Below, in pieces: positions 26,489 to 60,500 of a stretch of 64,000 nt of DNA; positions within the stretch are counted from its first letter, which is position 1, and each line of letters begins with the position of its first letter. The DNA comes from Carpediemonas membranifera BICM. Its lineage: Eukaryota > Protista > Fornicata. The notes under the pieces are model-generated. The model ran no database searches. It was given only the letters and a program-made list of their open reading frames with translations, and was not told the DNA's origin. A program made the translations under genes and the position numbers. The stretch is taken from contig JAHDYR010000045.1 in the NCBI GenBank assembly GCA_019828565.1, positions 10,680 through 74,679 of the forward strand, in the 5' to 3' direction.

Positions 26489-29337
26489 TCTACCGGGAGA
26501 TGGCGGACTGGGATAAGGCACGTATGCGCTCGGGTGGTCATGTATGGCTCGATTCAGGATTGACATGCTCGGCAATACTGCGATTTTACTTCCGACGACA
26601 GCCCAGCCCTGATCATGGTGCCTCGGCTCGGAGGTCGGAGGATACCCAGGTTTAGTTCGACTGCCTGTTACATCGTTCAGACGCTCGGACTTGGCCTTGT
26701 CCTGAAGAGGGCAGGAGCTGGATGAACATTTTCGACTGTGTTCCTGCAGTCTATATTGCGGGTTATGAATTTAATAAAGCCGAGCTGCGGTACCTCATCA
26801 CAGCTCACCATCTCCGGCCGAGCATTGCCTCCCTGTCGACGCGACACGCCTCCGCCTTCAGTTTTAAATGGAATATCACGCCGAGCACCCTATCAGTACT
26901 CCCTGAAACGCTCATTGAGCCAGTCTACAGTCCAACCCAAGAGCGTCGCCGTCTTCTCCGCGGGCACACAAGAACACATACAGGGGTTCACTCCCTTGGG
27001 GGAACAGCTGCGGTCATTCAACCCGCCTTGTGCGGCATACTTGATGCTACTGTGTCTGAGTCGCGATAAGTCCCCGACGCCGGGGAAAACAATGTTTGCC
27101 ATGAAGAAGAACTTGTACGGGCGGGTCGCCAAGGTGAGCTTAAGGTGTGTATTGCCGTCTCTCACGAAAGAATAGGCCTCATACACCTTAGCAAGGGTGT
27201 GAAGCCCGCACACGTCCCGGTGAGCTTCAGTGACCTTATTCACGTCGTCAACCACCAGCTGCGCGATGCGCCATACAGCCGGCGCGGTCGTGTCGAGGAT
27301 AGTGATCGGCTCAGGGTGGAAGCGGCACCAATAGTCGGAGATGCCCGCGTCGGCGCAGGTGCGGTTGAACGGCATAGGGTGGAGCACCGACCGTTCTTCG
27401 TGGTATTGGGATATATCAGTAACATCAAGGCCAAGTAAATCAACGAGAGAGCTGAATATGTCCCGCATGCCGAGCAACACCCTCTCATTACCGGCCATGG
27501 CGGCCGCCTCCTCAGCGTGGGTGTCACTCCACGTCATGGGCACCAACACAGACAGATGGGGGTTCCTGTGCTCCCAGATGACCTGGGACGAGGCATATGC
27601 CCGGCCGTAGTGGAGCCCGTGGTCGGATGCCAGCACCACGGCAGTGTCGCCCCGCTCGACGAGGGTCTGGATGAGGAGCAGGAGCTCGGGCTGGATGTAG
27701 CCGAGGCGGAAGAGGCTGTTGCCGTTGTGCGCCTCTTCGATGGGGATGTAGGTAAACGCCCGCTGGCCAGACGCGTCGACCCGTTCGTGGAAGTCGAGCG
27801 CGTGCCTTGCCTGCTGGGCAAAGGACCCCTCGGCGCCATTGCACACCTTACCTGTCTGGTGACAGTGTGACAATGCTTCGAATATCGGGTCGCATGCGAA
27901 ACCCGTCATGGCCACATCCCAGTCATCGTAGTTCGGAACAAAGTACATTCTGACATCATCACCACAGCACTGGCTGAAGATGCCTGTAGTCCACCCCTGC
28001 TCCCTCGCCGCTTCCCACAGCAAGGTTCGTCTCTTGTCGTCCCATAGAGCCCCGGTGAACATCGCCTGCTGGTTTGGCTGAGAGTTCGTCCCAACTACGC
28101 TGAGGAACGGAAAGGAATACAGGTCATACGGCACAGGGAGGTCGCCCAGAGACTGTAGATAGCTGACGACGTCTGGCAGCTGTCGGTTAAAGTTGGCCCT
28201 GGAAGTGCTGTCGATCATGATCATCGCGACGTGCTTGAACCCTTCAGTGCTGGCAGGGTCAGCTGGAACCTTGCCGACGAGGCCGGCCTCGAAGTCCGGC
28301 ATGTGGTACATGAGCTGGAATGTGTTATATTTCCTCATCTTTGACTTCCGCAGGATTTGGGTGACCAGGACGTTCGAACGCACGGCAATAGCACTCTCGA
28401 GCGGGCTGGACTGGAGGTCGTCGGTCATAATCCGGTGTTTTCTCTCCGGGATGTTGTCGTGCTGTGCATAGATCAGCCCGGCCTTGGTCGGGATGATGAT
28501 ATCATCCTGGGGCGCCCGGACGAGGTTGGACTTGTGGCCAGAGCATGGTGCGGGAGACTGGACAACGTGGCGCCGGATACTAGAGGCAATGACACGAGCC
28601 CCGCGCTCCTCTTCGGGCGGAGGGGCGGTTAGGCCCGCCCCGAATGCCGCGTGGACATCATACGAGTGATTTCTGAAAATGAGGGGCACGGTGTCGTTGA
28701 ATTTGGGATACAGCGGGTCACTGGCGCCCTTTGAGTTCGCTAGAAGCAAATCAGGCACGGATTCGTGGAGGTAGAAAGAATAGAAGCAGAGAACGCTGCA
28801 CAAGCACAGCAGTGCTGTCATGGATACTAAAGGGAGTGCTATGCGCGAACAAACGCGCAAGAAACTCCCTTTCCCCATCTCTTTGGCCGAGATCTCTGAA
28901 GTCGGAATCCAGTTTGATCCCCAACTGATGCATTCAAATCCCCTAGTTTGGACCATTTACACCACCACGGGTCTAAACCTCCTCAGTAAACACATTGTTT
29001 GACCCTTCAATAGCACAGTAATTACTTCGCATGAAGAAGGATGACGATGACGACGACTCAAAAGGGACCTACCCGAAGTATCTCCGGCACACTGCAGCCG
29101 ACTGGGTGAGGTTCCGCATGAGCTACGCACTCTATGCTGAAGATGAGGTCAAGCCGAAGACCCTCTCCGAGTGTATCGACGCGAAAGTGAGAACAAGTAT
29201 CAAGGGTGCGTACCAAGCTCTGGAGGACGACGAAAGCTCCGATGACAGCTCTGACAGCTCGAGTGAAGACGACGAGGAGATGTTCAGCGCCAACGAGGGT
29301 AGCGACAGCAGCAGGGGCGGCGAAGACGCGCACGCCC

Positions 29338-29438
29338 TGTGGCGTACTAAGCCTAGTTCAGGAATGTTTATAATTTCGACACACAGGTGTCGTGGTCTTA
29401 AACTGCAATATATAAATTATGGTGTACTGTCCATAACA
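29338..29438. mobile_element. Solo LTR (101 bp) in gag
   Basis: TGTGG...AACA ends, AT-rich, TSD GCCC (29334-29337, 29439-29442). Confidence 0.75.
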
Positions 29439-57580: not shown

Positions 57581-60500
57581 TGAGAGCCAGTGCAGTTTAT
57601 GTAAACAGATCTACCTGCGCAAGCCAACAATGGCACAATATCGATATTCTGCTTCTACAGAATCACACAGTGGTCTATCCGTGATAGACGTCTCTTCCCT
57701 CACAACTGGGTACGAGATCTGGTTACGGGAAGTCGGTAACGTCAAAAGACCCCGTTCTTTCCCCCACGCATTCACGGCAAAGACCCTCGAGCTTCTACAA
57801 GCCACATGGCGGCCCACCTCCACGTTACCGACCTTCGAGTCGTTCTGGGACTCCCTTATCCCTGACGTGGTCTCGCAGGCACAACACGCCAAGCAAGAAC
57901 CTGACAGACACGCCACGTCGTGCCGCGCAAGATACCGCGCGATCATCGACGCTCTGCAGGACGATCTCTTCTTGCTCTGTGCTGCAGCCGCCAACACCTA
58001 TAAGGACAGCCCGCTTCTCGACCCGGCGATGCGCCGGATGCAGGCTGTTTACGACCGCGCCGAGGCCGAGCTGAACGATAAGCTCGCCAGCCTCTGCACG
58101 GCCAGCCACGACCGCCACGAGGCGGACCCGGATGCGACCCTCACCTTCGCGACGCTAACGAACCCCCTGGACGACAAACCGGCCCGATCGGCCGCGGATG
58201 TCGCGAGAATCGTCAACTCTCTCCCGTCAGCGGCAACGGCCGCCCCCTCCGCCCCCGTGTCCGTGCGTGACCAGCTTCGCGCCGAGGCCAGGACCATCCT
58301 GCCTCACCTGTACCTTACCCTGATGCCAACACTCGACCGCGGTGCACGCCTCAAGGCCATCACGAGCAAGGGCACCCAACTGTACGGCCAGAACGCGGCC
58401 CACCGCCTTAACACTCTGCGCCTGCAGAAGGCGTGCGACGGGTACAACCCCGTCGTCGAGGCCGATGGCTACCATAAGATCCCCGACAGCGCCCTCCGCG
58501 CTGCGGTCCGGTCTGTCGCCCTCAAGGGATACGACGACGACGCGATCCCGCTATACGAGGCGCTGATCGAGCGGGATTCGGACGGCAACTGGCGTCCCGC
58601 CCGCGACTGCATAGACGCCCTCTCGACCCTCGAGACCGACCATCTCGGCCAGATCGTCGTCCCCTGGCAGGCCTATGCCGTGTCGACCAAGACGAAGCCG
58701 ATCCCGGCCGACAATAAGGCACCGCATGATAACAGTCAGTGCTCGAACAAGGACACCTCTGCTCGCGAGGGCCAGCCGCTGAAGCCGAAGGCCCACAAGG
58801 TCGAAGGCCAGGACCCGTTCAAGCAGTTTAAGGACAAGGAGCATTTCTACATCCCGAAGTCTTTCAATCGCTGGTGTGACAGGCATGGCTGGAACTCAAA
58901 GCATACAACCAAGGACTGCGGAGCGAACCAACGCGATGGCGCCGTCGGCGAGGTCCAAACGACCTCCATTCCCATACAGACAACCGTAACGGTCGCCGGA
59001 ACCGTCCAACTTCCAGCCAAGCTCGACACTGGCGCAGATGTCTGCGTCATATCCGAGCACCTCGCCCCAAAAGATACCAGGAAACATCCAATGGCGCGAG
59101 TCGGACCTCCGCCTGTTCGCCGCGGACGACCGCGTTATCTCCGTGGGCAAGATCGCCACCATGTCCATCACACTCCCTGGCATGGATGGCAAAACCGTCA
59201 CGCTCGACTGGGACGTCCACATGATCACAGGCACCAGCGACAGGATGCTGATCGGCAAGGACCTCCTCAGGCACATCGGCTACGTCCTCAACGACCGCCT
59301 ACTGATACTCCCGTCCGAGAAGCCGGATGATAAGGACGATCTAGAAGAGCACAACATGATCGACGCCGACGTCTTCGAAGCGGCGTCAACCTCGGACTCG
59401 AAGCATTCGCTCGCCGTCACGATCCCGGACGACCACGGCACCGAGTTCGCCAACAAGGTCCGAAGCATCGTCGAGGAGTTCGATGAGGTGTTCGACCCGG
59501 CTCTCCCGCCCGAAGGCAGCAAACTACAGCCTCACAAGATCGAACTCACACGCGATTTTCACCTCAAGTGCCGTCCTCGACAGCTTGTCGGAGAGGCTGG
59601 CTCAGCCGCCCTCTCCGAGATCGAGAAGATGAAGAAGCTCGGCATCATACGAGACAGCCAGTCCGAGCACGCCAGCCGCCACACGATGGCAACCAAGAAG
59701 AACGGCGAACCCCGCTTCTGCGTCGCATTCAACGATCTTAACGACGCCACGAAGGACGACGCCTTTCCCCTCCCCGATCTGAGGGACCTGCCCCACGAAG
59801 CCGGCGGATGCTCTTACTTTGCATCACTCGATCTCCGGTCCGGATACTGGCAGCAGCTGATGGAGCCGGCCAGCATCCACCTTACCTCGTTCGTAGTCCC
59901 CGGGCACCAATTCGAGTTCCTCAGGGTCCCGTTTGGACTTAAGAACGCCCCCTCCAAGTTTCAACGAGCGATGGAGGCCGTGCTAGATGGCATCCCCGGC
60001 CACCGGGTCTACGTGGATGACATATTCCTCTACGCACGGACCGAAGAAGGATTCCTCAACACCCTGAGACTCACCCTCCAGAGAGCCAAGGACAACCGCC
60101 TGCGCCTCCGCGCGGACAAATGTACCATCGGCGCCGCCGAAGTGGAGGTCTGCGGATTCATCATCAACAGCTCCGGCCGCTCGGTGAGCCCAGGCCGCGT
60201 CGCCGCGCTGAAGGAGCTGCCCGCCCCCACCACCGTCACAGAGCTCAGACGCACGATGGGCAAGTTTAACCACCTCGCAAACTACCTCCCGCAACTCAGC
60301 TCAGCCACAGCCCCCTCAACGCCCTCCTCAAGGGGTCACCCAAGAAGCTAGACAAGCTCCCTTGGACTGAGGAACACGACAAGGCATTCGCGGCTCTGAA
60401 GGAGCTGTGCACCGACAACAAGGCATTGGCACTACCCAACCTGACCTGCAAGTGGACACTTGAGACAGACGCGTCCACAATCGCAGCCGGCGGAGTGCTG

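Follow-up and report, generated by a model that had tools for sequence, protein, structure and literature searches.

Palindromes at the primer-binding position in a chromovirus lineage of Carpediemonas membranifera and environmental DNA

Nearly all retroviruses and retrotransposons with long terminal repeats (LTRs) start reverse transcription from a host tRNA; copia and Ty5 are primed by a half-tRNA, their site being complementary to an internal part of the tRNA. To our knowledge, the proven exception to tRNA priming is self-priming of the Tf1 type. Retroviral dimer initiation sites, such as the HIV-1 kissing loop, are 6-nt loop palindromes on a hairpin that lies apart from a normal tRNA site. 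Here we describe a lineage of Ty3/Gypsy retrotransposons in which a palindrome at the 5′ LTR's end replaces the tRNA site. The lineage occurs in environmental DNA and in the genome of the fornicate protist Carpediemonas membranifera BICM (assembly GCA_019828565.1), where we analyzed a stretch of 64,000 nucleotides (contig JAHDYR010000045.1, positions 10,680 to 74,679; hereafter the window, numbered from its first base).

In Tf1, pairing is between the priming site and the transcript's first 11 nt, which are a distinct LTR sequence (Levin, 1995, 1996; Lin and Levin, 1997, 1998, via PMC7175516); the resulting self-primer RNA duplex of 11 bp lies directly after U5, and RNase H cuts it between bases 11 and 12 (PMC7175516). 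Like Tf1 and sushi, the elements reported here are Ty3/Gypsy elements with a chromodomain and no tRNA primer, and the duplex proposed below would span 10–14 bp, against 11 bp in Tf1. Unlike them, they hold no complementary segment in the LTR, and the palindrome pairs only with itself. Fungal GalEa elements of the Ty1/Copia group also lack a tRNA site; Donnart et al (2017; BMC Genomics 18:410, PMC5445492) described a Conserved Hairpin Site in them and proposed no mechanism, a finding repeated later in PMC6934838. In these elements of the Pezizomycotina, whose LTRs measure 138–311 bp, a 9-bp box right after the 5′ LTR is palindromic together with the final A of the LTR (A followed by CTGATCAGT or by CTAATTAGT), existing as one or two nearly fixed sequences, and a second complementary box, CHSeq2, 12–41 bp downstream, is able to form a hairpin (PMC5445492). 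The present elements share with GalEa the missing tRNA site and a post-LTR box that is palindromic when the final LTR A is counted. Unlike GalEa, a Copia group with integrase before reverse transcriptase, they are Gypsy chromoviruses whose palindrome differs from family to family and is accompanied by no second box. A search of the genome for RVT_2 (Copia) returned no match, but control genomes were silent as well.

Dictyostelid Skipper chromoviruses have lost the TGG site and show no Tf1-type LTR complement, and a novel form of self-priming has been suspected for them; the palindrome elements differ from Skipper, which carries a polypyrimidine stretch in place of the tRNA site (PMC5006619). 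With retroviral dimer sites, our sites share a self-complementary sequence in the 5′ leader that is able to pair two genomic RNAs, and they differ in being linear palindromes of 10–14 nt, without a predicted hairpin, at the primer-site position itself. We found no published description of palindromic sites in Gypsy elements, although our coverage of the literature was incomplete. An initial annotation of the window had spoken of a candidate new priming system. This was overstated, as the GalEa palindrome was already known (PMC5445492); the downstream box of GalEa is, however, absent here. A palindrome over the final A of the LTR is therefore not new; the novelty is a chromovirus clade that has a palindromic priming site throughout, variable in sequence and without a partner.

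Junction palindromes and their covariation

The window elements belong to one distinct lineage of Ty3/Gypsy retrotransposons with a chromodomain. Pfam matches to RVT_1, RT_RNaseH, Integrase_H2C2 and rve occur in that order in the elements designated A, E and F (Table 1), each with a chromodomain (PF00385) at the integrase C-terminus; a fourth element, G, matches gag-asp_proteas, and a gag zinc knuckle and a protease are among the domains of the region. This domain set and its order identify the elements as Ty3/Gypsy chromoviruses (Metaviridae). LTR ends of the form TG...CA, short target site duplications (TSDs; 4–5 bp) and a polypurine tract before the 3′ LTR are all present. The LTRs of the lineage are very short (57–145 bp in the window) and the leader is almost nil. 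LTR pairs are identical in many copies, including A, E and F (100% each), so these families were recently active, as had been supposed; a copy of the A family is also found in RNA-like contigs, described below.

We fixed the LTR edges without use of the palindromes, relying on direct repeats and LTR-only copies. The assembly comprises 24.2 Mb with about 1,500 reverse transcriptase candidates, and the palindrome lineage appears to be a large part of it. Within 356 kb, including the window, 20 further 10-kb loci and the flanks of tRNA loci, we found 12 different junction palindromes, six of them outside the window (ATTAGTACTAAT, CATTGAATTCAATG, ATTTCTAGAAAT, AGTAATATTACT, CAGTGTTAACACTG and AATGATCATT). 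All 12 cover the terminal A of the LTR, and three cover the C too; with 11 relatives from metagenomes added, 23 of 23 junctions have a palindrome that takes in the last A or CA of the 5′ LTR. The gag ATG follows 4–17 nt after the palindrome wherever an open reading frame (ORF) is present, except in F, where the ATG that opens the gag ORF lies upstream of the palindrome, within the LTR. Genome-wide, 19 copies of the E junction have zero mismatches over 24 nt.

A palindrome is present in every family in which LTR repeats fix the junction (12/12) and at no junction between a 3′ LTR and its flank (0/16). As a background, only 0.74% of the 45,728 CA sites in the 356 kb have a perfect palindrome of at least 10 nt over the A. 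Taken together, these counts exclude chance. The palindromes are A/T-rich, typically with 2 G/C of 12, in a genome of about 55% G+C.

The observations of the initial annotation are thus confirmed: all six palindromes it listed in the window exist, they take in the terminal A of the LTR every time and are missing after 3′ LTRs, and they occupy precisely the position required of a primer-binding site. Its picture of six Gypsy elements needs two corrections. A, E and F are complete, but the element at 44710 is a deletion derivative and G is cut by E. At 46256 the LTR is unconfirmed by a pair and only one partial second copy exists in the genome; the anatomy there is as at the other sites.

Across families, the palindromes vary at every position save the A set by the LTR end, and the symmetry stays perfect. 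Two pairs of sister families differ by compensatory double changes, namely L074 and L079 (ATTCCGGAAT vs ATTCGCGAAT, with CG vs GC at the center) and L058 and L059 (AGTGTATACACT vs AGTGTTAACACT, TATA vs TTAA). The E, L031 and L045 families, 65–73% identical in pol, carry ATTAACGTTAAT, ATTAGTACTAAT and ATTTCTAGAAAT, which differ at positions 4–6 and 7–9. In 20 of 23 families, position 3 is a T and the mirror position an A. The compensatory double changes indicate that pairing is conserved rather than sequence, in agreement with the initial annotation. Using ViennaRNA, we obtained energies of 0 to −4 kcal/mol for the hairpin and −9 to −20 kcal/mol for the homodimer; an intramolecular hairpin, being energetically nil, was rejected, leaving the duplex between two copies of the site as the only meaningful structure. 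A base-pairing function of the palindrome is therefore well supported.

Relatives, phylogeny and the search for other priming partners

A large protein collection contained only relatives of 25–35% identity. A scan of metagenome contigs with the pol alignment yielded 80 loci, many of them short-LTR elements with the same anatomy and other palindrome sequences (Table 1). Once L056, L062 and L087 are added, about 24 different sequences of 10–14 nt are known, all perfectly self-complementary. Elements with LTRs of 240–430 bp on other contigs have usual TGG sites right after the LTR, for example CA-T-TGGTGACCTCGACG.

We built a maximum-likelihood tree from 341 RNase H–integrase columns of 63 uninterrupted ORFs; joined frames and reference Tf1 or sushi sequences were left out. 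A single clade (support 99/97) takes in all 21 palindrome rows; its sole other members are two contigs without a 5′ end, and the TGG-site, long-LTR elements lie outside it. Within the clade, pol is only about 30% identical. The palindrome is therefore a character common to the members of a single lineage. None of the rows checked outside the clade has a palindrome beside the gag ATG. Palindromes of 10–12 nt in the outgroup rows L064, L069, L089 and L093 were attributed to chance, given that the one in L089 lies inside the gag ORF and that the checked outside rows lack a palindrome next to the gag ATG.

Two further metagenome loci carry palindromes. L051 (ENA metagenome contig, 4,399 bp), a distant relative with a polyprotein 28% identical, came out of assembly as a circle (about 4.28 kb) and has a 16-nt palindrome, TTCAAAAATTTTTGAA, 14 nt upstream of the gag ATG. 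L053, outside the palindrome clade, has ATATCGTACGATAT at 212–225, 211 nt before the ATG.

No junction carries TGG (0/23). We compared the leaders with 15 unique host tRNAs (13 anticodons, CCA added), internal half-tRNA matches included, using shuffled leaders as control; the best complement spans 6–8 nt, no better than for shuffled leaders. On both counts priming by the tRNAs compared was rejected, and the tRNA independence of the palindrome elements is well supported, as the initial annotation had held. Its statement that a Tf1/sushi-type complement is missing extends beyond the LTR: a second copy of the palindrome with up to 3 mismatches was found nowhere in six full elements, which excludes Tf1-type pairing with the transcript 5′ end. 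The SH3_Tf2-1 domain (PF24626) has no match in A, E and F. No complementary box of the GalEa type was detected in 23 families (100 nt downstream and 45 nt upstream, up to 1 mismatch).

A possible priming scheme and its rivals

The LTR edge should mark the start of minus-strand synthesis. As that start determines where U5 ends and the internal region begins, the primer 3′ end is expected to be complementary to the bases from the terminal A on, and would have to pair with the left half of the palindrome. The complement of the left half would be the right half of the same palindrome, and no other element sequence appears to fit. From this anatomy we infer that a second element RNA may pair there through its own copy of the palindrome, giving an RNA homoduplex of 10–14 bp; one strand would then be cut at or near the duplex 3′ end, probably by the element RNase H as in Tf1, and the new 3′-OH would be extended across the U5-R of the partner. 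The palindrome would in that case be dimer contact and primer-binding site in one. The predicted duplex takes in the last LTR base, so that either the cut would fall one base inside the duplex or one ribonucleotide would be kept at primer removal; HIV-1 retains one ribonucleotide when its primer is removed. A second element RNA suggests itself as primer because it is implausible that about 24 families should each use a host RNA of their own. A self-complementary primer-binding site, by which one element RNA would prime another in trans, is in our judgment the best explanation of these features, and one that we cautiously consider probable. The interpretation of the initial annotation is to this extent partly supported. 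More tentatively, and as a proposition we rate as quite possible but short of probable, an ancient chromovirus clade would prime by an undescribed mode in which the two co-packaged genomic RNAs pair at the palindrome and one of them is cut at the duplex end to serve as primer on the other, with no host RNA involved; a single sequence element would then serve dimerization, the choice of primer and recognition of the primer site.

Several points weigh against priming in trans. Although the palindrome duplex is predicted every time in whole-leader cofolds, the energy gain stays within the range of shuffled controls. Head-to-head by-products of family E, in which an LTR end and palindrome would be joined to an inverted LTR end, are not found in the genome. 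LTRs of 43–57 bp must force very short U3, R and U5, which complicates any scheme. If the whole 5′ fragment acts as primer, there is no built-in stop for plus-strand strong-stop DNA, unlike with a tRNA or the 11-nt Tf1 primer. The comparisons also draw on 15 unique host tRNAs and 356 kb of 24.2 Mb.

Information on transcripts comes from Logan contigs of four small runs made from one 2017 sample; these contigs look RNA-derived (10 Mb, k-mer depth 15–80, coverage holes, poly-T loose ends); a host-gene contig among them ends 37 nt short of the LTR. Contigs of an A-family copy reach without a break from the 5′ LTR (28952 or 28988) across an intact palindrome into gag and pol, so some RNAs carry at least 29–65 nt of LTR upstream of the palindrome. 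This copy shows 8 differences in 344 nt, none of them in the palindrome, and the adjoining base 29027 differs. Contig ends at 28987–28990 coincide with a graph branch and are therefore not to be read as transcript starts or poly(A) sites. Every LTR has a conserved A/T-rich motif (TATAAAAG, TGTAAAC, AGTAAAC or GATAAAA) at a fixed distance, 25–40 nt, before its end, a candidate TATA-like element, poly(A) signal, or both.

The palindrome might instead serve dimerization or packaging only, priming being left to a very short primer, a protein or an unrecognized host RNA. That retroviral palindromes mediate RNA dimerization is established (discussed in PMC5445492), and no stable structure other than the homodimer is predicted here. 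We nevertheless regard this as unlikely: a dimer signal has no need to be anchored on the last LTR base, yet all 23 junctions are so anchored, and with the gag ATG 4–17 nt away there is no room for a separate primer site. Retroviral sites are, moreover, 6-nt hairpin loops beside a normal tRNA site, and here neither hairpin nor tRNA site exists. About as improbable is a form of self-priming in which the primer is not the partner genome but a short RNA derived from the element, whether an abortive or alternative transcript starting at the palindrome or an antisense or small RNA; the site being symmetric, antisense RNA from it has the same sequence. A TATA-like motif 25–40 nt before the LTR end makes an initiator at the terminal CA conceivable, but the same motif may equally be a poly(A) signal, and upstream of the palindrome the A-family contigs include at least 29–65 nt of LTR. 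With a short primer there would be a natural run-off stop, as there is in Tf1, and self-priming competence of Tf2 is reported to be controlled by alternative start sites (PMC5341516).

Recognition at the DNA level by a dimeric protein (a host factor, integrase or a core-promoter element), instead of RNA pairing, appears very unlikely. Dimeric DNA-binding proteins typically bind palindromes, T at position 3 and its mirror A recur in 20 of 23 families, and a host ARF-like gene carries a 16-nt palindrome across its ATG. Against these stand about 24 sequences with compensatory variation at every position, which point to base pairing and not to the specificity of one protein, the location of the site outside the integrated LTR ends that integrase sees, and its occurrence in relatives from many unrelated environmental hosts. 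Least credible of all is a cryptic tRNA or half-tRNA site of the copia/Ty5 type: 6- to 8-nt matches do fall in the anticodon loops of tRNA-Asn, tRNA-Thr and tRNA-Lys, but shuffled leaders match the 15 tRNAs equally well, TGG is present at no site, and about 24 perfectly symmetric sites would demand as many palindromic host RNAs.

If priming in trans between element RNAs is true, it would be a second host-independent priming solution, clade-wide and sequence-variable yet always symmetric, and would supply a mechanistic rationale for the packaging of two genomes; it would also explain the very short LTRs and leaders and an escape from silencing based on tRNA fragments. The unexplained palindromic box of GalEa would gain a testable model. 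Programs for LTR annotation that insist on a tRNA site would overlook this lineage or misclassify it.

Element anatomy and further observations

Table 1. Mapped features of the window elements and palindromes of metagenome relatives. Positions refer to the window.
Feature	Position	Strand	Description
Element A 5′ LTR	28926–29017	+	92 bp, TG...CA; 100% direct repeat with 33576–33667; TSD CCAAC at both flanks
Element A junction palindrome	29017–29026	+	AGTAATTACT; first base is last LTR base; gag ATG 4 nt on
Element A internal region	29018–33575	+	gag (CCHC), reverse transcriptase, RNase H, integrase, chromodomain; from Pfam and ORF layout
Element A 3′ LTR	33576–33667	+	followed by TSD, without palindrome
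A/T-rich LTR motif in A	28982–28990		example
Deletion derivative (E-like) 5′ LTR	44625–44710	+	86 bp; 100% LTR-only copy at C26:995180
Deletion derivative junction palindrome	44710–44721	+	AATGTCGACATT; ATG next
Deletion derivative coding remnant	44696–46119	+	C-terminal RNase H, integrase, chromodomain after palindrome and ATG
Junction-type palindrome	46256–46267	+	CAGTAATTACTG; covers CA; ATG 4 nt on, ORF only 68 aa
Element G 5′ LTR	47371–47515	+	145 bp
Element G junction palindrome	47515–47526	+	AGTTTTAAAACT; overlaps last LTR base
Element E 3′ LTR	49725–49836	−	112 bp; preceded on element strand by polypurine tract GGAGGGGCAG
Element E internal region	49837–55655	−	gag, 991-aa pol ORF (reverse transcriptase, RNase H, integrase, chromodomain), ~1.9 kb 3′ region
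Element E junction palindrome	55645–55656	−	ATTAACGTTAAT; gag ATG 9 nt on
Element E 5′ LTR	55656–55767	−	112 bp; 100% repeat with 49725–49836
A/T-rich LTR motif in E	55680–55687	−	example
Element F 5′ LTR	57581–57637	+	57 bp; TSD ACCG; 100% identical to 62206–62262
Element F junction palindrome	57637–57648	+	AATATCGATATT; first base is last LTR base
Element F internal region	57638–62205	+	gag, reverse transcriptase, RNase H, integrase, chromodomain
Element F 3′ LTR	62206–62262	+	palindrome absent after it
L055 palindrome			AGTATTAATACT; metagenome contig
L056 palindrome			AATAGTTAACTATT; metagenome contig
L057 palindrome			AGTTAGCTAACT; metagenome contig; 73-bp LTRs, TSD CGGC
L058 palindrome			AGTGTATACACT; metagenome contig
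L059 palindrome			AGTGTTAACACT; metagenome contig
L062 palindrome			AGTTTATAAACT; metagenome contig
L066 palindrome			AATAAACGTTTATT; metagenome contig
L074 palindrome			ATTCCGGAAT; metagenome contig
L075 palindrome			ATTGTCGACAAT; metagenome contig
L077, L079, L080 palindrome			ATTCGCGAAT; metagenome contigs
L087 palindrome			AATATCGATATT; metagenome contig
L092 palindrome			AAAGTTAACTTT; metagenome contig
L125 palindrome			ATAGTAATTACTAT; metagenome contig

The elements of the window are nested, with F inserted in an E-like minus-strand element (56815–64000) and E cutting G. The whole-genome search with the G LTR returned 5 LTR-only copies that stop exactly at 47515 and 6 copies that run on into leader and gag, placing the last base of the LTR at 47515, which is also the first base of the palindrome; the gag-protease ORF of G starts at 47544, and the element is interrupted at 49722 by the E insertion. 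Relatives of the LTR at 44625–44710 with 80% identity match on through the palindrome, and this element arose by internal deletion, its LTR and palindrome being joined to the C-terminal part of RNase H.

In E-like elements, a region of about 1.9 kb separates pol from the 3′ LTR (49837–51697 in E; 55768–56814 in the E-like element H), with an antisense ORF (50804–51655 and 55876–56769, respectively) that has no Pfam match. An 88-nt stretch of this region in E (50572–50659) is 84% identical to 17846–17933, the start of the host ORF 17451–18446, which has a C-terminal histone fold. On contig C6 (749273–755921), three 2,168-bp units form a tandem array, each opening with a G-type LTR and leader, and a final LTR closes it; this is probably a non-autonomous derivative amplified in tandem.

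In the RNA-like contigs, loose ends at 28987–29019 lead to a related 43-nt LTR made up of a polypurine tract, TGTTGCGCAGTA and the terminal 31 nt of the A LTR. Beyond the LTR end, these contigs continue into at least three different sequences, representing read-through or LTR-driven transcripts into flanks. A foreign sequence, TGAGTGACAGCCAAGGTCC, and its complement stand on contig ends at 29850, 30841, 31390 and 33271 (runs X2–X4), and are probably a library adapter.

A host gene for an ARF-like GTPase is present in two tandem copies on the minus strand, within a 1,521-bp tandem duplication (34898–36718); a perfect 16-nt palindrome, ACGGCTCATGAGCCGT, preceded by C, lies over the start codon of each (36064–36079 and 37585–37600). 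A general excess of palindromes at host gene starts was not seen in the examined sequence. The window also holds a RabGAP gene with 78% identity to a Carpediemonas membranifera protein, the next named matches being far weaker, which points to Carpediemonas or a near relation, a free-living metamonad, as host. Elsewhere in the window, a degraded RNase H–integrase fragment of another Gypsy element, 26–38% identical to A, E and F, occupies 24693–25814 on the plus strand. Positions 1–12200 are marked by an A-rich strand (AT skew 0.25–0.33); a non-LTR retrotransposon ORF with endonuclease and reverse transcriptase domains lies at 7970–9904, and two repeats of 75–79% identity (5787–6011 and 11912–12138) stand about 6.1 kb apart.

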